Part shown: one piece after another, positions 2,490 to 33,786 of the stretch
Layout of the letters: every line of letters begins with the position of its first letter
Numbering within the stretch: position 1 is the first letter of the stretch
Assembly: GCA_025201805.1 (NCBI GenBank)
Contig: MU619284.1
Location: forward strand, 84,484 to 148,483
Direction: 5' to 3'
Source of the DNA: Parasitella parasitica NRRL 2501
Taxonomy: Eukaryota; Fungi; Mucoromycota
Length of the DNA stretch: 64,000 nt
Notes under the pieces: generated by a model
Databases searched by the model: none
Told to the model about the DNA's origin: nothing
The model's input: the letters and a program-made list of their open reading frames with translations, nothing else
Translations under genes and position numbers: made by a program

Positions 2490-3473
2490 TTAGTTGGAGG
2501 CAGCAGCAGCTCTACGGCGATCACGCTCTTCAGTGATGGAGAGCTTGACACCCTTACCCTTGGGGAGGGAGACCATGGGCTTGGAACCTTGGCCGATAGT
2601 GAAGACGTTGGAGATACGGGTAGCGAAAACACGGTCAAGAGCATCCTTGATGTGGACGATTTCGAAACCACCAATGTGGCGTTCACGGTGAACAAGTTGA
2701 CCAACACGACCAATGTTACGACCACCAGTAACCATAACAACATTACCGACGTCGAACTTGACGAATTCTTCAATCTTGTTGGATTCGAGGTTAAAACGAA
2801 TGGTGTCGTTAACCTTGATCAAAGGATCGGGGTAACGAATGGTACGACCATCATGGGTGGTGATGTAAGGGATACCCTTGGAACCAACAAGGACCTTCTT
2901 GACCTTACAGAGCTTGTACTTGGCCTCCTCATCAGTGATGCGGTGGATGGCGAAACGACCCTTAACGTCATAGACGAGACGGAAGTTTTCACCAGTCTTC
3001 TCAATAGAGATAACATCCATGAAACCAGCGGGGAAGGTGGAATCGGTACGGACCTTGCCGTCAACCTTGACCAAACGTTGCATGAGAATAGATTGGACTT
3101 CACGACCGTTAAGAGCATACTTGAGACGGTTACGGATGAAGACGATCAAAGGAAGACACTCACGTTGCTTGTGGGGACCGGAAGAAGGCTTAGGGGCATA
3201 AGCACCTGTATAACTTTTAATATACTGTATAGCGCAACTCTGATCATAGCCAACACATACCTAAAAGTTTGTCAAGCATCCAGTGCTTGGGAGCTGCCAA
3301 ACGCTTCATATGTTTCTTAGGACCACGACCCTATAATAACAAGCATTTTTTTTTAGCTCAATATTCACATCCATCAATTCGTCCATCCATCAACAAATGT
3401 ATCGATCCATCCATTTCAAGATTATATTGATAACTTTGATGGATGCATCTACAATCTATTGCCAACATACCAT
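2490..3473 (-). CDS. RPS4: 40S ribosomal protein S4 (eS4); 2 introns, first coding exon is ATG only
   Basis: M|[21 protein letters not shown]..|[32 protein letters not shown]...[15 protein letters not shown], with strong codon bias. Confidence 0.97.
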
Positions 3474-4906
3474 TATGAGATAATTATCAAGGGGATTAAA
3501 AAGGAGGGATCAAAGTTTGGAAAACCACATTTTGCTTTATCAACATTTACGGGAATCAAATTGGTGGCTTGATTCAGGCTTCTGTGACTAGAATGAATGG
3601 TGAAAACTCAATGCGCAAAGATATTGGAAAGGATACAAATGTTTCAGCGCCAATGGATGATTGTTTGATAGGACACAGTTGTGTATGATACAACATTTTA
3701 AATCTTATTAGGCTTACATGGAGATATTAGGCATCAATTCATCGGCCTTCTATTCATTATTTCGTTACGCATGGGCCCATCTAAACAAGATATCAAAAGA
3801 AATGCAAGTTTCTCCTCAAAAAATTTAGATATAGACCCAAATAATGCCATCATTGATAGATGCTCATTTTTGTTTGTTTAAGCATTGAGAAACAAATTGA
3901 TATGAAAACAGCATCAAAAACGACATCTTCAGATAATTTAATTCATCCCAAATTATAGACAAAGACAAGTCTCTATTCGTTTTTGGGAGATATTTGTACC
4001 AGTACAAGCATTGATCATTTCTTTGTAGCATAAAGTATTCAAAAGAGGCCTAGCAATACCACTATATTTATTGGACGCAATCCCTTTCAATTTGAATAAT
4101 ATGTTTAGCATTGAAACACTGCCAGACATTTATCTAGTATCCCCCCCCCTGATTCATAATTTGTTGATTAGCCTTCTCAACAACATTGTACAAAGTCGTA
4201 TCCATAGTATTATTAATTTAATTATCTGACTAGTGCACGTCAAATATTTAATCTTTCACATACTTAAACATCCGGGCATACAAACATGTAATGCCAAATA
4301 TTTTGCGCAAACAAACTCTGTTAATTCACACTGGTGTGTGCCAACATTTAATTTTTCAGTCTCCAGTGCATGCTGGATGTGCTTCGATCCTTAATATGTA
4401 TAATACAAAAATAGAAAAAGGCATCCTTGACGCGGTATTGTGTATAGTAAAACATTCGTGTGCATTATCATTATACATTTATAGGAGTGGTCAAGTATAT
4501 GTGTACACGCAATGTTTATTCGAACAATTATCCAGAGAGTGAACGATGTACATTATTATTATACAAGTGCATTATGCAAATAAATAGTAGTAAAATCAAA
4601 AAACTAGTAATGCTGATATGTAGTTGTACTTGCAGCTTACAGACTCGAAATACATATGAAATGACAGTAATGATGGTCTATCATGCCATTGTATATTAGT
4701 ATTGTTTATGTAAAAATATATGTATAAATGTATACTGTAGAATATAACTTGTGATCTATTTTATATAATTTTAGCTTCAAGGATACATAAAGGGATCGCA
4801 GTATCAGCTACCCAGAAAATAAATCAGGGACGCAATAGGAGTGGTCAAAAGGAATATGCCAGCGTAAAAAAAAACAATGGACGAACGAGACAGCATAGAG
4901 CACATG

Positions 4907-5551
4907 CTATGACTGATAGGGTGTCGCTACGAAATGATGCTGATGAGGTAAAATCATCGGTCTTTTAGATGCTGGCGGTGACAGTGTAGAATTGGAAGCA
5001 TTCTCTAACGTTAATCGTAGCTGGACGCTTGGAGGCTGATTCTTTATGAGATTTTCATCTTGATAATGGTGTTTCTGAGCAATTGTTGAGCTGGTAGATG
5101 ACCAGGCAGAACAAGAGGAAGATGAAAATTTACTGCTATACGTTGATTCTGGCGTGGTGATCAATTTTTCGTTTGTAAACACCATAGGAGGGTGATTATT
5201 CCATTCAAGATCTGCTTCTTGCAGTGCTTTATGTCTCCTTTCAAATGAGAAAGGCCCAGACCATCCGACCTTATCCATCCTCTTTTCATTTACTTTACGT
5301 CGAATGCGACTGCAGTTCAAAATAAAGCATGTCAAGATAACTAAAAAGACGACAATTACTATAGTAAATGGTCCCCATGTGGTGGTTGGTATTCGCTCCG
5401 TTGTGGCTCTAGCAGGTGTATATATGTCAGTGATCATTGCCATGTCGGTGGATGTGGTCGGCTTGCCATGGTTTTGATGCTTATGTTTAGACGATAAAGT
5501 AGCAGAAGCAGTAGCAGCAGTAGGAGATGCTATGACAAGGAATGGATCCAT
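4907..5551 (-). CDS. Hypothetical single-pass membrane protein (Ser/Thr-rich N-terminus, one TM helix, basic juxtamembrane segment)
   Basis: Intronless 214-aa ATG ORF. TM segment FTIVIVVFLVILTCFIL is followed by RIRRK. Confidence 0.6.
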   Translation of the reverse strand: MDPFLVIASPTAATASATLSSKHKHQNHGKPTTSTDMAMITDIYTPARATTERIPTTTWGPFTIVIVVFLVILTCFILNCSRIRRKVNEKRMDKVGWSGPFSFERRHKALQEADLEWNNHPPMVFTNEKLITTPESTYSSKFSSSSCSAWSSTSSTIAQKHHYQDENLIKNQPPSVQLRLTLENASNSTLSPPASKRPMILPHQHHFVATPYQS

Positions 5552-28827: not shown

Positions 28828-29441
28828 ATGAGAAGCATGCTCTTGCCTTTACTAGCCATCTTTGCTGCAATCTCAACCGTTTGCGCGAGCGAGGATTTCA
28901 ACGACGCCGATTTTCAAAATCAAGTACTAGAGACACACAATAAAATAAGAAAAGAGCATAAAGTAGAGCCACTCGTATGGGACGACGAACTTGCAAAACA
29001 TGCTAAGAGATGGGCGAATACATGTGTGTGGCATCACAGTAACGTATGTGTGTACAAATAAGTATCTATGTATAGTTTAATTAATTATCTTTGTATAATG
29101 TAAAGGATACCCGCCCTTACGGTGATAAATGTGGCGAAAACATATCATACGGCCAACCTTCGATTTCCGCCGCCATCGCAGAGTGGCATGATCTTGAAGT
29201 TAATGATTACAACTTTGGCACTGGAGAATCAAAAAATGGAAACGAAATTAGACACTTTACTCAAGTCGTATGGAGGAAAACGCAGAAAGTTGGATGCGCC
29301 CAGCATTACTGCGATAATGATCCAGATACCAATAAGGATTTAGATGGCAATTTCTATGTTTGTAATTATTACCCTCAAGGAAACATAAGAACTGCGGAGG
29401 CCTACACGCATAATGTTTACAGCAGCTCTTATGAGCAATAA
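28828..29441 (+). CDS. Secreted CAP/SCP/PR-1 (Pry-like) protein, one intron
   Basis: Signal peptide, HNKIRKEH, LVWDDELA, GENI, HFTQVVWRKTQKVGCA and YVCNYYPQGN. Confidence 0.92.
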
Positions 29442-30614
29442 CATACACACATATATTACAATAATAGTTGAATAAAAATAATCCTTTCAAGAAGCAGTTT
29501 TTTGTTTTAACTAATGCAAAAAAACTTTTTGTACGATATGTACAATCACATTTGCCACAAGTCCATGCGTATATAGTTCAAATAGTGGTATGATTTTATT
29601 GCTCTAAGAAGGTCGTCTTACCCCTTAATGATGGAAAAGGAGTTTGAGCATAAAATCGGGAAAATCATAAACCCACCAACATCAATACTTGCCCACCCAA
29701 AGCTTGTATTCGACAAAATTAGAAACATCATCATCAACAAAGCATTGCAAAGAGCCACAAAATATCTAGTAAATACGTAATACTTTGCAGCTGTCAAAAT
29801 TACTGGTACAAAGAATTTCAAGATGAAGTATTACCACTTTGATGGTGTTTTTCAGAGCCTTTTTGATGGATTAAGAGCTCAAAATTATACCAAACGACTC
29901 TCCATAACTTGCAGGTGCCATATGATATATTTACAGAAAAAAAAAGATCGACAAAAAATCTATCGATTTTTGACGATTTCGCATGATGGTCCATAAGGCC
30001 AAATCAACAAAAATCACTCTATCTTAAATTTGACCTCAAAAATAAAGTTTTCTGTTATGGTGTATATTAATCGAAAACAACCCCAAATGTTCAACTACTA
30101 TTATGCGATTACCTATTTAGGTTTTGTATATGCAAGAAATGAACTTTTAGCCGAAAAACACGTTTTTTTTCAAATAGACAAATCTCAATTTTTTTAGTAT
30201 AGAATTTTTAATCAAAATGCACAAAAAGATAGAAAACTTGATTCCCTACAAAAATTAATTAAAATGTATTGTATACTTGGCTAGTAAATTTTAGAGATAT
30301 GGACGAAAAAGTGCAAATTTTTTCCAAATTGGTTCCAGGTTTGGTCGTATTCCTCTAATAACGGATCCTAGTGCGGAGAATGAATATTTTTAGCAACAAA
30401 TGAATTCAGTCTGAATTAGGATGCAAAATGCCTCACAAAAGGGCATAATAAAGATTGAGCATCGTGAAGGATTAAAATTTTAAAATGCATGTTAAAGCTG
30501 AAATGGTAGGAATGTCTCGCAGCATTTTAAAAGATCTTTGAGTAGTACATGAGCATGGATAAACATAAATTTATTGAGATTCACATTACGCTATCAGTTA
30601 CCGTATTTCTACTT

Positions 30615-31824
30615 AATAGAAAAATTAAACTTTCAGTTATACACCGTCCATTTTTTAGAGCTTGCCTGGAAAAGTCTTTAAACACACTTGCTTCTACACA
30701 AGTTTACCGTGTGCTATACGGCGATTCTTTTCTTTTTTATAGATAGATGGACGACCTTCCCCACTCCAATGTGCCGTTGATATACTGGCCATATTCTTGT
30801 TGGCGTTCATGCCCCGGTCCCACAGAATTGGACAGTTTTTGCAATCTTGAAGCCCATAAAACCTTTGTCTATATGTAAATTTTAAATCATGCTCTTAACT
30901 CTACATGAGGAACAAACCAATCAAATTTGTGAAAATTAGCCCCTAGTGGCTTTCGTTTATTTCTTACCTTCAATGTATTATATTCATTCACCGCGACAAC
31001 AGCTGTTGTTAACTGTTTTGATAATATTAGTTGGACAGCGGTCAAATAATGTTGAAATGGCTAGCATTTTTCTGGATGGAGGTAAAAAAAATACAATAAA
31101 TCAAACCGGAAGAAACCAACAGAAATAAGAGAAGGAAACGAAAGAGAAGAAAATAAGTAGTTAAGGACAAGTTCAGGCAACATATATGACAAATTATGAA
31201 AAAAGAAGACCAACTGTTTTTGCAGATAACTTTTGATAGACGCAACGAGCAACTTTCTTCCAAAAGAGCCGGTTTACAAGAAATCCAAGTTTACCCCATC
31301 GGTGAAAGTTTCTGTGGTTGTGTTTGGGACGAAGGCTTAAAAAATAAGAAAAATGCTCTCATGAAAGGGCTTCTCTCTGGAACCAGTGGTGTTCTTCCGA
31401 TGTCACTATACTAGAGATCAAAACAGTTAACAACAGCTGTTGTCGCGGTGAATGAATATAATACATTGAAGGTAAGAAATAAACGAAAGCCACTAGGGGC
31501 TAATTTTCACAAATTTGATTGGTTTGTTCCTCATGTAGAGTTAAGAGCATGATTTAAAATTTACATATAGACAAAGGTTTTATGGGCTTCAAGATTGCAA
31601 AAACTGTCCAATTCTGTGGGACCGGGGCATGAACGCCAACAAGAATATGGCCAGTATATCAACGGCACATTGGAGTGGGGAAGGTCGTCCATCTATCTAT
31701 AAAAAAGAAAAGAATCGCCGTATAGCACACGGTAAACTTGTGTAGAAGCAAGTGTGTTTAAAGACTTTTCCAGGCAAGCTCTAAAAAATGGACGGTGTAT
31801 AACTGAAAGTTTAATTTTTCTATT
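30615..31824. repeat. Long inverted repeat: 408-bp arms (30615-31022 and 31417-31824) around a 394-bp spacer
   Basis: The left arm AATAGAAAAATTAAACTTTC...AACTGTTTTGAT is the reverse complement of the right arm ATCAAAACAGTT...GAAAGTTTAATTTTTCTATT. Arm lengths are equal and no mismatch was seen in the parts compared by eye. Confidence 0.95.
31030..31745 (+). pseudogene. Fanzor (eukaryotic TnpB-like RuvC nuclease) C-terminal fragment, degenerate, with a 50-nt intron
   Basis: Ordered motifs: GQR..VEMASIFLDGGKK; VVVFG/DEGLKNK..MKGL.SG; VVAVNEYNTLK (RuvC-II-like); intron 31472-31521; VCSSC..DCKNC (Zn ribbon); LWDRGMNANKNM (RuvC-III-like, NRD Asp replaced by Gly); WSGEGRP. It carries several stops and frameshifts. 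Confidence 0.78.
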
Positions 31825-32283
31825 TTATTTTTCTGAAGGTCATCCAAAGTAATACTGTAAATGTATAGTCATTTCACCGAGTTTGACTGATTTATACATT
31901 GTCTTTTAATGTTGTGGTCTCTGATTATGGTGTGACACAAGTAAGATACTTTTCTATGATATGCTATAATCGGCGCTAATTTAGAAAGATAATCAAAAAA
32001 GATGGATAAAAAGAAAGGGTGTAAAACAAACAAGGAAGAATCTGAGATTATCGTCTTAGATTCAAGCAAGCCTGGATTGATCACGAAAGCATGATTGGGC
32101 CATTTCATATACGGCAATTCAATCACAAGCACTAGATTCGATGCGCTTTTTGTGACTATGTGAAGATGATGATAATCAGTTTTGATGGGAGGTTCTTCTA
32201 TATAAAACATTCCAGATTCTCAAACATCTCTTTCGGTTTCTTATTTCTTTACACAATCTACCTGAACTAACATACAAATCAAA

Positions 32284-33786
32284 ATGCCTGGAAACGATCT
32301 TCAAGCTAATGGCAACAACAAGCCCAGAGAAGCTTCTGCGTCCCCTTATGCATCCACTGATCCCAACTCAAATGTCAACAATTTCAAGATTATTGAATCC
32401 ACTCTCAGAGGTAAGGCTGATAAACCAAAGCAACCCTTATCGCTGTGTACTGATTTCAATGTTTATTTAGAGGGCGAGCAATTCGCAAATGCTTTCTTTA
32501 CCACTGAAATGAAAGTTGGTAAGTGTGTGTTACGCTGGAGGGTTTTTGAAATAAATCCGCCGAGACAGAATACCTAATTTTTCTTTCATTGATTTAGAAA
32601 TTGCAAAAGCTCTTGATAGCGTTGGAGTTGATTACCTTGAATTGACTTCCCCTGCTGCTTCTGAGCAATCCCGTAACGATTGCACAGTCATTTCTAACCT
32701 CGGTTTAAAGGCCAAAATCCTGACTCATGTCCGCTGTCATATGGACGATGCCAAGTTGGCCATTGACACCGGTGTGGATGGCCTTGATGTCGTTATTGGC
32801 ACGTCTAGCTTCCTCCGCGAGTTCTCTCATGGTAAAGATATGGATTACATCACCAAGCAAGCTATTGAGGTAATTACGTATATCAAGAGTAAGGGTCTTG
32901 AAGTTCGTTTCTCCACTGAGGATTCTTTCCGTTCCGATCTTGTTGATTTGTTGAGCATCTACAAAGCTGTTGACAAGATCGGCGTGAATCGTGTTGGTAT
33001 CGCTGATACTGTTGGTTGTGCAAACCCTCGCCAAGTCTACGAACTCGTCAAGACCTTAAGAAGCGTTGTTAGCTGTGATATTGAATGCCATTTCCACAAT
33101 GACACTGGTTGTGCTATTGCTAATGCCTATGCCGGTAAGCTCCAGATCATAGATTTATTCGTAGTATGTGTGGTATTTACAGAGCATTGTGTTACATAGC
33201 GTTGGAAGCTGGTGCTACACATATTGATACTTCAGTTCTCGGTATTGGTGAGCGTAACGGTATTACACCTTTAGGTGGTCTTTTGGCTAGAATGTATACA
33301 GCTGATAAGGAGTATGTCAAGACCAAGTATGATCTTACCAAGATCCGTGAGGTCGAGAACATGGTTGCCAAAGCTGTTGAAGTTACAGTTCCTTTTAATA
33401 ACTATATTACTGGCTACTGTGCTTTCACTCACAAGGCTGGCATTCACGCTAAAGCCATTTTGAACAACCCTTCAACTTATGAAATCTTGGACCCTACTGA
33501 TTTCGGTATGACTCGTTATGTTAGTATCGGTCATCGTTTGACTGGTTGGAATGCTGTCAAGAATCGTGTTGAACAACTTGATCTGGATTTAACTGATGAC
33601 GATGCCAAGGTAGTTACAGCTAAGATCAAGGAATTAGCAGATGTCAGACCCCTTTCCCTGGACGATGTCGATATCTTGCTGCGTTCATACCATCATGCCA
33701 AGGCTGATGGTGCTCACAAAGACCTCTTGGACATGATTGGGAAGCCCGAACACATTACCTCAATTGGATCTGAAGCAACCGCATAA
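32284..33786 (+). CDS. LYS20: Homocitrate synthase, 3 introns
   Basis: FKIIESTLR|[54 protein letters not shown] and [21 protein letters not shown]. Confidence 0.96.

Follow-up and report, generated by a model that had tools for sequence, protein, structure and literature searches.

A decayed Fanzor1 pseudogene with an inverted-duplicated 3′ end, transcribed and spliced in RNA contiguous with a homocitrate synthase leader in Parasitella parasitica

Analysis of a 64-kb stretch of contig MU619284.1 of Parasitella parasitica NRRL 2501, from now on referred to as the window, revealed the C-terminal third of a Fanzor1 pseudogene on the plus strand (31023-31745), of which only the last ~220 codons survive and whose 3′ end lies within an inverted-repeat structure of 1210 bp (30615-31824). 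We consider it very likely that a Fanzor1 gene decayed and was then converted by one rearrangement into this 1210-bp inverted structure, which is now transcribed and spliced into the leader of a homocitrate synthase gene. An initial annotation of the window had placed a Fanzor remnant at 31030-31745. The remnant is indeed found there, but the element spans 30615-31824 and its inverted repeat had been missed. In addition to the inverted duplication, the splicing seen in sequencing run X7 and the absence of a further DNA copy of this lineage go beyond what had been annotated.

Fanzor1 elements were described in 2013 in Mucor circinelloides (10 families), Rhizopus and Phycomyces (Bao & Jurka, PMC3627910), and a Mucorales Fanzor1, PpFz1 of Parasitella parasitica, has since been solved structurally (PMC11423790). 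Given that Fanzor1 has been known from Mucor since 2013, the novelty of the locus as a family member is low and a dead copy is to be expected. Pieces and exons of the remnant were searched separately. Four stop-free pieces of the window gave no relevant Pfam match even at E 10, so the locus was assigned to the family through transitive and profile homology. Using the 66-aa last piece (31545-31742) as the query, 35 further places with 30-50% identity were found in the 32.8-Mb genome (best E 1e-9 to 1e-10), and many of them coincide with the 36 in-genome places that score above the cut-off of PF07282 (Cas12f1-like_TNB). The same query returned 44 proteins at E ≤ 1e-3 from 1.84 billion representative proteins. 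Seven longer matches from this library (219-690 aa) were scanned, with four passing the PF07282 cut-off, two falling just under it and one giving no match. One library match, P0030, is the Mucor flavus 'Cas12f1-like TNB domain-containing protein', and the sole match of its full-length sequence among solved structures is SpuFz1 (Spizellomyces Fanzor1). A C-terminal profile of the family with the window piece as its first row matched the Fanzor2 ApmFz2 (9b0l, 6e-8) and SpuFz1 (8gkh, 2e-5), and also LaTranC, Cas12m, TnpB, GtFz1, PpFz1 and Cas12 chains. The Fanzor/TnpB kinship proposed from the letters alone is thus borne out by homologues that pass PF07282 and by window-led profile matches to Fanzor, TnpB and Cas12 structures. 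The nearest kin are two short public contigs from Logan assemblies, L068 and L069, with 65-69% nucleotide identity. L069 aligns with the window DNA over 504 nt at 68% identity (E 6e-47), the best local alignment covering 31277-31776, and the protein encoded by the last exon is 52% identical between the window and L068/L069. Homology to both contigs spans 31023-31030 to ~31776-31785, and the part upstream of 31417 also aligns to the library protein P0020. The locus passes as a descendant of an intron-bearing Mucorales Fanzor1 sublineage, a statement about descent and not about function.

All peptides that had been quoted for the remnant are present in plus-strand frames of 31030-31745. GQRSNNVEMASIFLDGGKK is read from 31033, VVVFG and DEGLKNKKNALMKGLLSG are found at 31300-31380 in two frames, VVAVNEYNTLK ends at 31471 with GTAAGA beginning at 31472, LWDRGMNANKNM lies at 31614-31649 and WSGEGRP is found upstream of the gene's stop codon (31743-31745). 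The matches of the 66-aa last piece and the alignment of the window DNA to L069 place this set of motifs far beyond chance. Homology to the family begins with a 'YQGxQR..EM.NIL.NGGKK' motif and then runs, in order, through a Lys-rich linker, a 'VPVVVFGDG..KG' block, the Glu motif, the intron, the zinc ribbon and RuvC-III. The rearranged RuvC-II Glu (VNEY, 31454-31456) is retained and aligns with 'VNEYLTTKTC' of ApmFz2, whose catalytic triad is Asp324/Glu467/Asp501, Glu467 being the rearranged catalytic glutamate (PMC11832414). The VNEY at ApmFz2 464-468 is identical to the window motif, Glu467 included, and the surrounding (D/N)E(Y/F)xTSK feature is kept as VNEYNTLK with a Ser to Leu change in TSK. 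The zinc-ribbon relic (31522-31607) comprises VCSSC (31522-31536) and DCKNC (31593-31607), two CxxC motifs that are recognisable but lie in separate frames with a TAA (31555-31557) between them; the corresponding region of homologues passes the PF07282 cut-off. At the RuvC-III Asp position (31626-31628), equivalent to ApmFz2 Asp501 in the profile alignment, the window encodes Gly, reading WDRGMNANKN instead of W[DNQ]RD. Of the other 11 sequences in alignment A2, 10 have Asp at this position and one, P0010, likewise has Gly.

Stops at 31126-31128, 31412-31414 and 31555-31557 and at least three frame changes leave the remnant without a continuous open frame. Upstream of 'YQGxQR', tblastn of P0030, P0020 and P0007 against the whole 64-kb window found nothing of RuvC-I, WED or REC. 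In full-length relatives the 'YQGxQR..EMxNILxNGGKK' block lies ~110 residues downstream of RuvC-I, and in the window it begins where the left arm of the inverted repeat ends. The window peptide 'IFLDGGKK' was considered as a RuvC-I candidate and rejected, as it aligns to 'EMxNILxNGGKK', ~110 residues past the ..DPGR.. RuvC-I block of relatives. The intergenic left flank contains an old dispersed repeat (29870-30310) with 11 other genomic places at 67-72% identity; as a dispersed repeat lacking similarity to Fanzor proteins, it was likewise rejected as a hidden 5′ half. The view of the locus as a dead copy whose 5′ half is missing therefore holds for the whole window: lacking RuvC-I, REC and WED parts, the RuvC-III Asp and an open frame, the nuclease cannot work, and the relic today is passenger DNA.

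Compared with known systems, the window shares with Mucorales Fanzor1 proteins (the MCi families, PMC3627910; PpFz1, PMC11423790; P0030) the 'IPLIVFGxG..KG' block, (D/N)E(Y/F)xTSK, a recognisable CxxC..CxxC, W(D/N/Q)RDxNAxxNM, W.G.GRP and a Lys-rich, NLS-like linker upstream, and differs from them in its broken frame, the Gly in place of the RuvC-III Asp and its inverted-duplicated 3′ end. The module of rearranged RuvC-II, TNB and RuvC-III is also found in ApmFz2, a mimivirus Fanzor2 (9b0l), and in bacterial TnpB/Cas12f; these, however, are distant (profile E 6e-8) and functional enzymes with an omega-RNA, whereas the window copy is a relic.

An ancestral phase-0 intron of 50 nt interrupts the remnant at 31472-31521, with an intact donor, GTAAGAAATA, and TG instead of AG at the acceptor (31520-31521; GATTG in the window versus GATAG in L068). 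L068 and L069 carry GT..AG phase-0 introns of 52 and 50 nt, respectively, directly after ..EYNTSK, with the same donor, GTAAGAAATA, and the next exon of L069 opens with VCSSC, as does the window after its 50 nt. At the same site, L067 has a 69-nt in-frame intron that the gene caller read through. Within the P. parasitica genome, a young family (L023-L038, at least 10 copies) contains a 65-nt intron at this boundary, one copy having a GC donor, and its last exon is an open frame of 84 codons in which WNRD and the two CxxC motifs are present. The boundary lacks an intron in other in-genome families, among them the P0030-like one; P0030 itself and its in-genome copies thus differ from the window in lacking an intron after TSK. 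These same-site introns in relatives show that an intron with a broken acceptor, as initially annotated from GTAAGA and the terminal TG, is the correct reading, and that the intron marks a sublineage. Likewise, the expectation of spliced relatives elsewhere in the genome is matched by the at least 10 copies of the related in-genome family with an intron and an open last exon. It should be noted that apparent open frames of 650-1266 aa at in-genome paralogues (L061-L066 and many of L023-L056) are due to N runs, as which the upstream parts of most of these paralogues read, and do not represent intact genes. L068 and L069 resemble the window in intron position, donor, the VCSSC exon start (L069) and a conserved non-coding tail past the stop, and differ from it in their open exons, AG acceptor and WDRD over the stretch seen. 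They also continue upstream into coding sequence at the point where, in the window, the inverted arm takes over.

A repeat search of the window showed that 30615-31022 is a 100% identical inverted copy of 31417-31824, giving two arms of 408 nt with 394 nt between them. The right arm (31417-31824, plus strand) carries the pseudogene's 3′ end in the original orientation and a non-coding tail, and the left arm (30615-31022, minus strand) is the inverted copy of these final 408 nt, containing the RuvC-II Glu motif, the intron relic, both CxxC motifs, the Gly-bearing RuvC-III motif, the stop and a 79-nt tail. The RuvC-II-to-stop portion therefore occurs twice at the locus: the sequence from ..RSKQLTTAVVAVNEY to the stop codon plus the 79 nt beyond is present in both arms, tail outward. 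The spacer (31023-31416, plus strand) holds the upstream portion of the surviving Fanzor coding remnant with its frame changes and stops, and the inner end of the left arm adjoins the onset of homology to the Fanzor gene (31023-31030). No DNA copy of the arm beyond these two was found in the 32.8-Mb assembly of the organism itself, even at E ≤ 10, and a nucleotide search of this assembly found no other DNA copy of this Fanzor lineage.

Perfect palindromes are a known artefact of long-read sequencing and of assembly. If the structure had arisen in this way, for example through a chimeric fold-back read, the genome would contain just one Fanzor tail, and the exact identity of the arms would fit such an origin. 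Short-read de Bruijn contigs of the DNA runs X2, X3 and X6 and of the RNA-like run X7 speak against it. The left flank unitig stops at 30644, 30 nt into the arm, and the right flank unitig begins at 31795. The arm forms its own 408-nt unitig in X2 and X3 at a depth of ~1.5-1.7x that of the flanks, and in X2, X3 and X6 the arm's outer end is where both flanks attach. The spacer forms a 454-nt unitig (30993-31446) in X2, X3 and X7 that overlaps the arm on either side, while in X6 the arm and the first part of the spacer lie in one 624-nt contig and the spacer contig breaks at an abundant repeat. The inverted duplication is the only structure that fits this unitig graph. A flank-arm-spacer graph of this kind and the ~1.5-1.7x arm depth are incompatible with a single arm, which makes an artefact exceedingly improbable. 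As the DNA runs may come from the assembled strain and do not represent independent strains, they exclude an assembler error and remain compatible with a strain-specific event.

Beyond the stop codon, a non-coding tail (31746-31785, plus strand) retains 65-72% identity to relatives and likely corresponds to the transposon end, with a putative omega-RNA region. A CCGU..ACGG hairpin within the tail is conserved among three sequences, yet its fold is no better than that of shuffled sequences (z -0.4). Homology fades ~30-40 nt past the stop (31776-31785), leaving the last ~40 nt of the arm with no counterpart in relatives. As the ancestral element end is deduced from just two diverged relatives, the presence of ~40 nt of flanking sequence inside the arms is a soft claim.

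Long perfect terminal inverted repeats could also point to a mobile origin, namely a non-autonomous foldback or long-TIR transposon, composed of two Fanzor right ends, that arrived at the locus as a 1210-bp unit by transposition. Fanzor1 elements of Mucor, Rhizopus and Phycomyces have been described with MuDR-like TIRs and 9-bp target-site duplications (PMC3627910), which would be in line with this proposal. However, no target-site duplication was seen around 30615 and 31824, where the bordering sequences are ...TTTCTACTT and TTATTTTTC..., and the genome contains the unit only once; both observations argue against a mobile foldback element. Further, most of each arm is decayed coding sequence and homology to relatives stops ~40 nt short of the arm ends. 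Taken with these points, arrival by transposition is highly unlikely.

Decay of a resident Fanzor1 followed by one rearrangement, the origin we favor, probably proceeded as follows. A Fanzor1 of the intron-bearing Mucorales lineage would once have been located with a CAP-domain gene on one side and the homocitrate synthase gene on the other. The gene would then have decayed through an AG to TG change at the intron acceptor, the Asp to Gly change in RuvC-III, stops, at least three frame changes and a repeat-derived insertion of ~60 nt. After this decay, a single rearrangement would have deleted the 5′ two-thirds of the element and replaced them with the element's terminal ~370 nt, copied in inverted orientation together with ~40 nt of flanking sequence. 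Every defect is common to the two arms, which implies either that the duplication took place after the decay or that the arms are being homogenised; we infer that decay came first and duplication second. Fold-back or template-switch repair, acting in a single event, would be the presumed mechanism.

A perfect 14-nt palindrome, ACAACAGCTGTTGT, is found at 31429-31442 and 30997-31010, 12 nt into each arm from its inner border, and an 8-nt palindrome, TAATATTA, opens the spacer at 31023. Either could be a former template-switch site, but neither accounts for the 394-nt spacer. The repeat-like insertion within the spacer (31182-31247) covers ~60 nt that are missing in L068/L069, as seen from a gap in alignment A1, and has 80-86% similarity to one unit of an abundant repeat that recurs every ~337 bp. 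A 33-nt core of this repeat has a read depth of ~2500-5500 compared with ~40-155 for single-copy DNA. Many contigs of the assembly have this repeat at or close to their ends (loci L003-L020, such as L003 1081-1318 and 1418-1658); it may be a satellite at which the assembly breaks.

Run X7 is considered RNA by guess only; the GT..AG introns of homocitrate synthase can be recognised in its contigs. A 2062-nt X7 contig begins at 31417, the first position of the right arm, and continues into a coding sequence with its ATG at 32284 that encodes homocitrate synthase of the lysine pathway (Pfam HMGL-like and HCS_D2 on its ORFs). From this contig, a 67-nt GT..AG intron is removed at 31472-31538 on the plus strand (joint 31469>31537, cut +2, i.e. 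31471 to 31539). The splice combines the old donor with a cryptic acceptor 17 nt past the dead one, removing the first CxxC (VCSSC) and yielding Lys-Ser-stop. Leader exons at 31539-31773, 31839-31940 and 32002-32283 follow in the spliced contig, separated by introns at 31774-31838 (GC..AG) and 31941-32001 (GT..AG) that are defined by its joints. The X7 contigs and their joints indicate that the relic is transcribed on the plus strand and spliced, contiguous with the 5′ leader of homocitrate synthase, the X7 contigs in themselves giving neither strand nor abundance locally. Leader and coding mRNA presumably form one molecule, bearing in mind that a contig can chain overlapping transcripts. A 21-nt joint, 31240>31786, in a 5564-nt contig was taken as a chance or short match and has no second place in the assembly.

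Two further features of the transcribed region were observed. Inside the leader exon 31539-31773 lies an ATG-started ORF of 38 codons (31629-31745; MNANKNM...GKLV), which would act as an upstream ORF of homocitrate synthase if the leader is one molecule. To the left of the element, in the CAP-domain gene (Pfam CAP) with its plus-strand ORFs, an X7 contig skips 55 nt (29066-29120) with CT..AC ends, that is, GT..AG on the minus strand; this may represent an antisense spliced transcript or a shifted joint.

Transcription of a perfect inverted repeat raises the alternative of a selected hairpin, in which RNA running through both arms would form a 408-bp duplex to be diced by Mucor RNAi, the resulting small RNAs either silencing the Fanzor lineage or tuning the homocitrate synthase mRNA, whose leader carries one arm. 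The 100% identity of the arms over 408 nt fits this idea. X7 contains the right arm and also the spacer unitig with 30 nt of the left arm (30993-31022), so that some RNA crosses the junction between left arm and spacer, while the left intergenic flank is absent from X7. On the other hand, no other match to the arm exists in the 32.8-Mb assembly at E ≤ 10 and the in-genome Fanzor paralogues are only 38-46% identical in protein, leaving no visible small-RNA target except the locus itself, and a young duplication explains perfect identity equally well. A selected hairpin is therefore a very unlikely explanation. If true, such a locus in the leader or promoter of homocitrate synthase would place a lysine-biosynthesis gene or incoming Fanzor copies under small-RNA control.

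These findings leave the known function of Fanzor unchanged. For the family, they point to a phase-0 intron that is conserved in one Mucorales Fanzor1 sublineage between the rearranged RuvC-II Glu and the zinc ribbon, a site that is useful for gene models since prokaryote-style callers split such genes or read through the intron (P0001, P0002, P0004). For the organism, the locus is a clean, naturally occurring case of a perfect palindrome of recent origin in a fungus and illustrates that the splice donor of a dead transposon gene can survive and find new use with a cryptic acceptor in the leader of a housekeeping gene.
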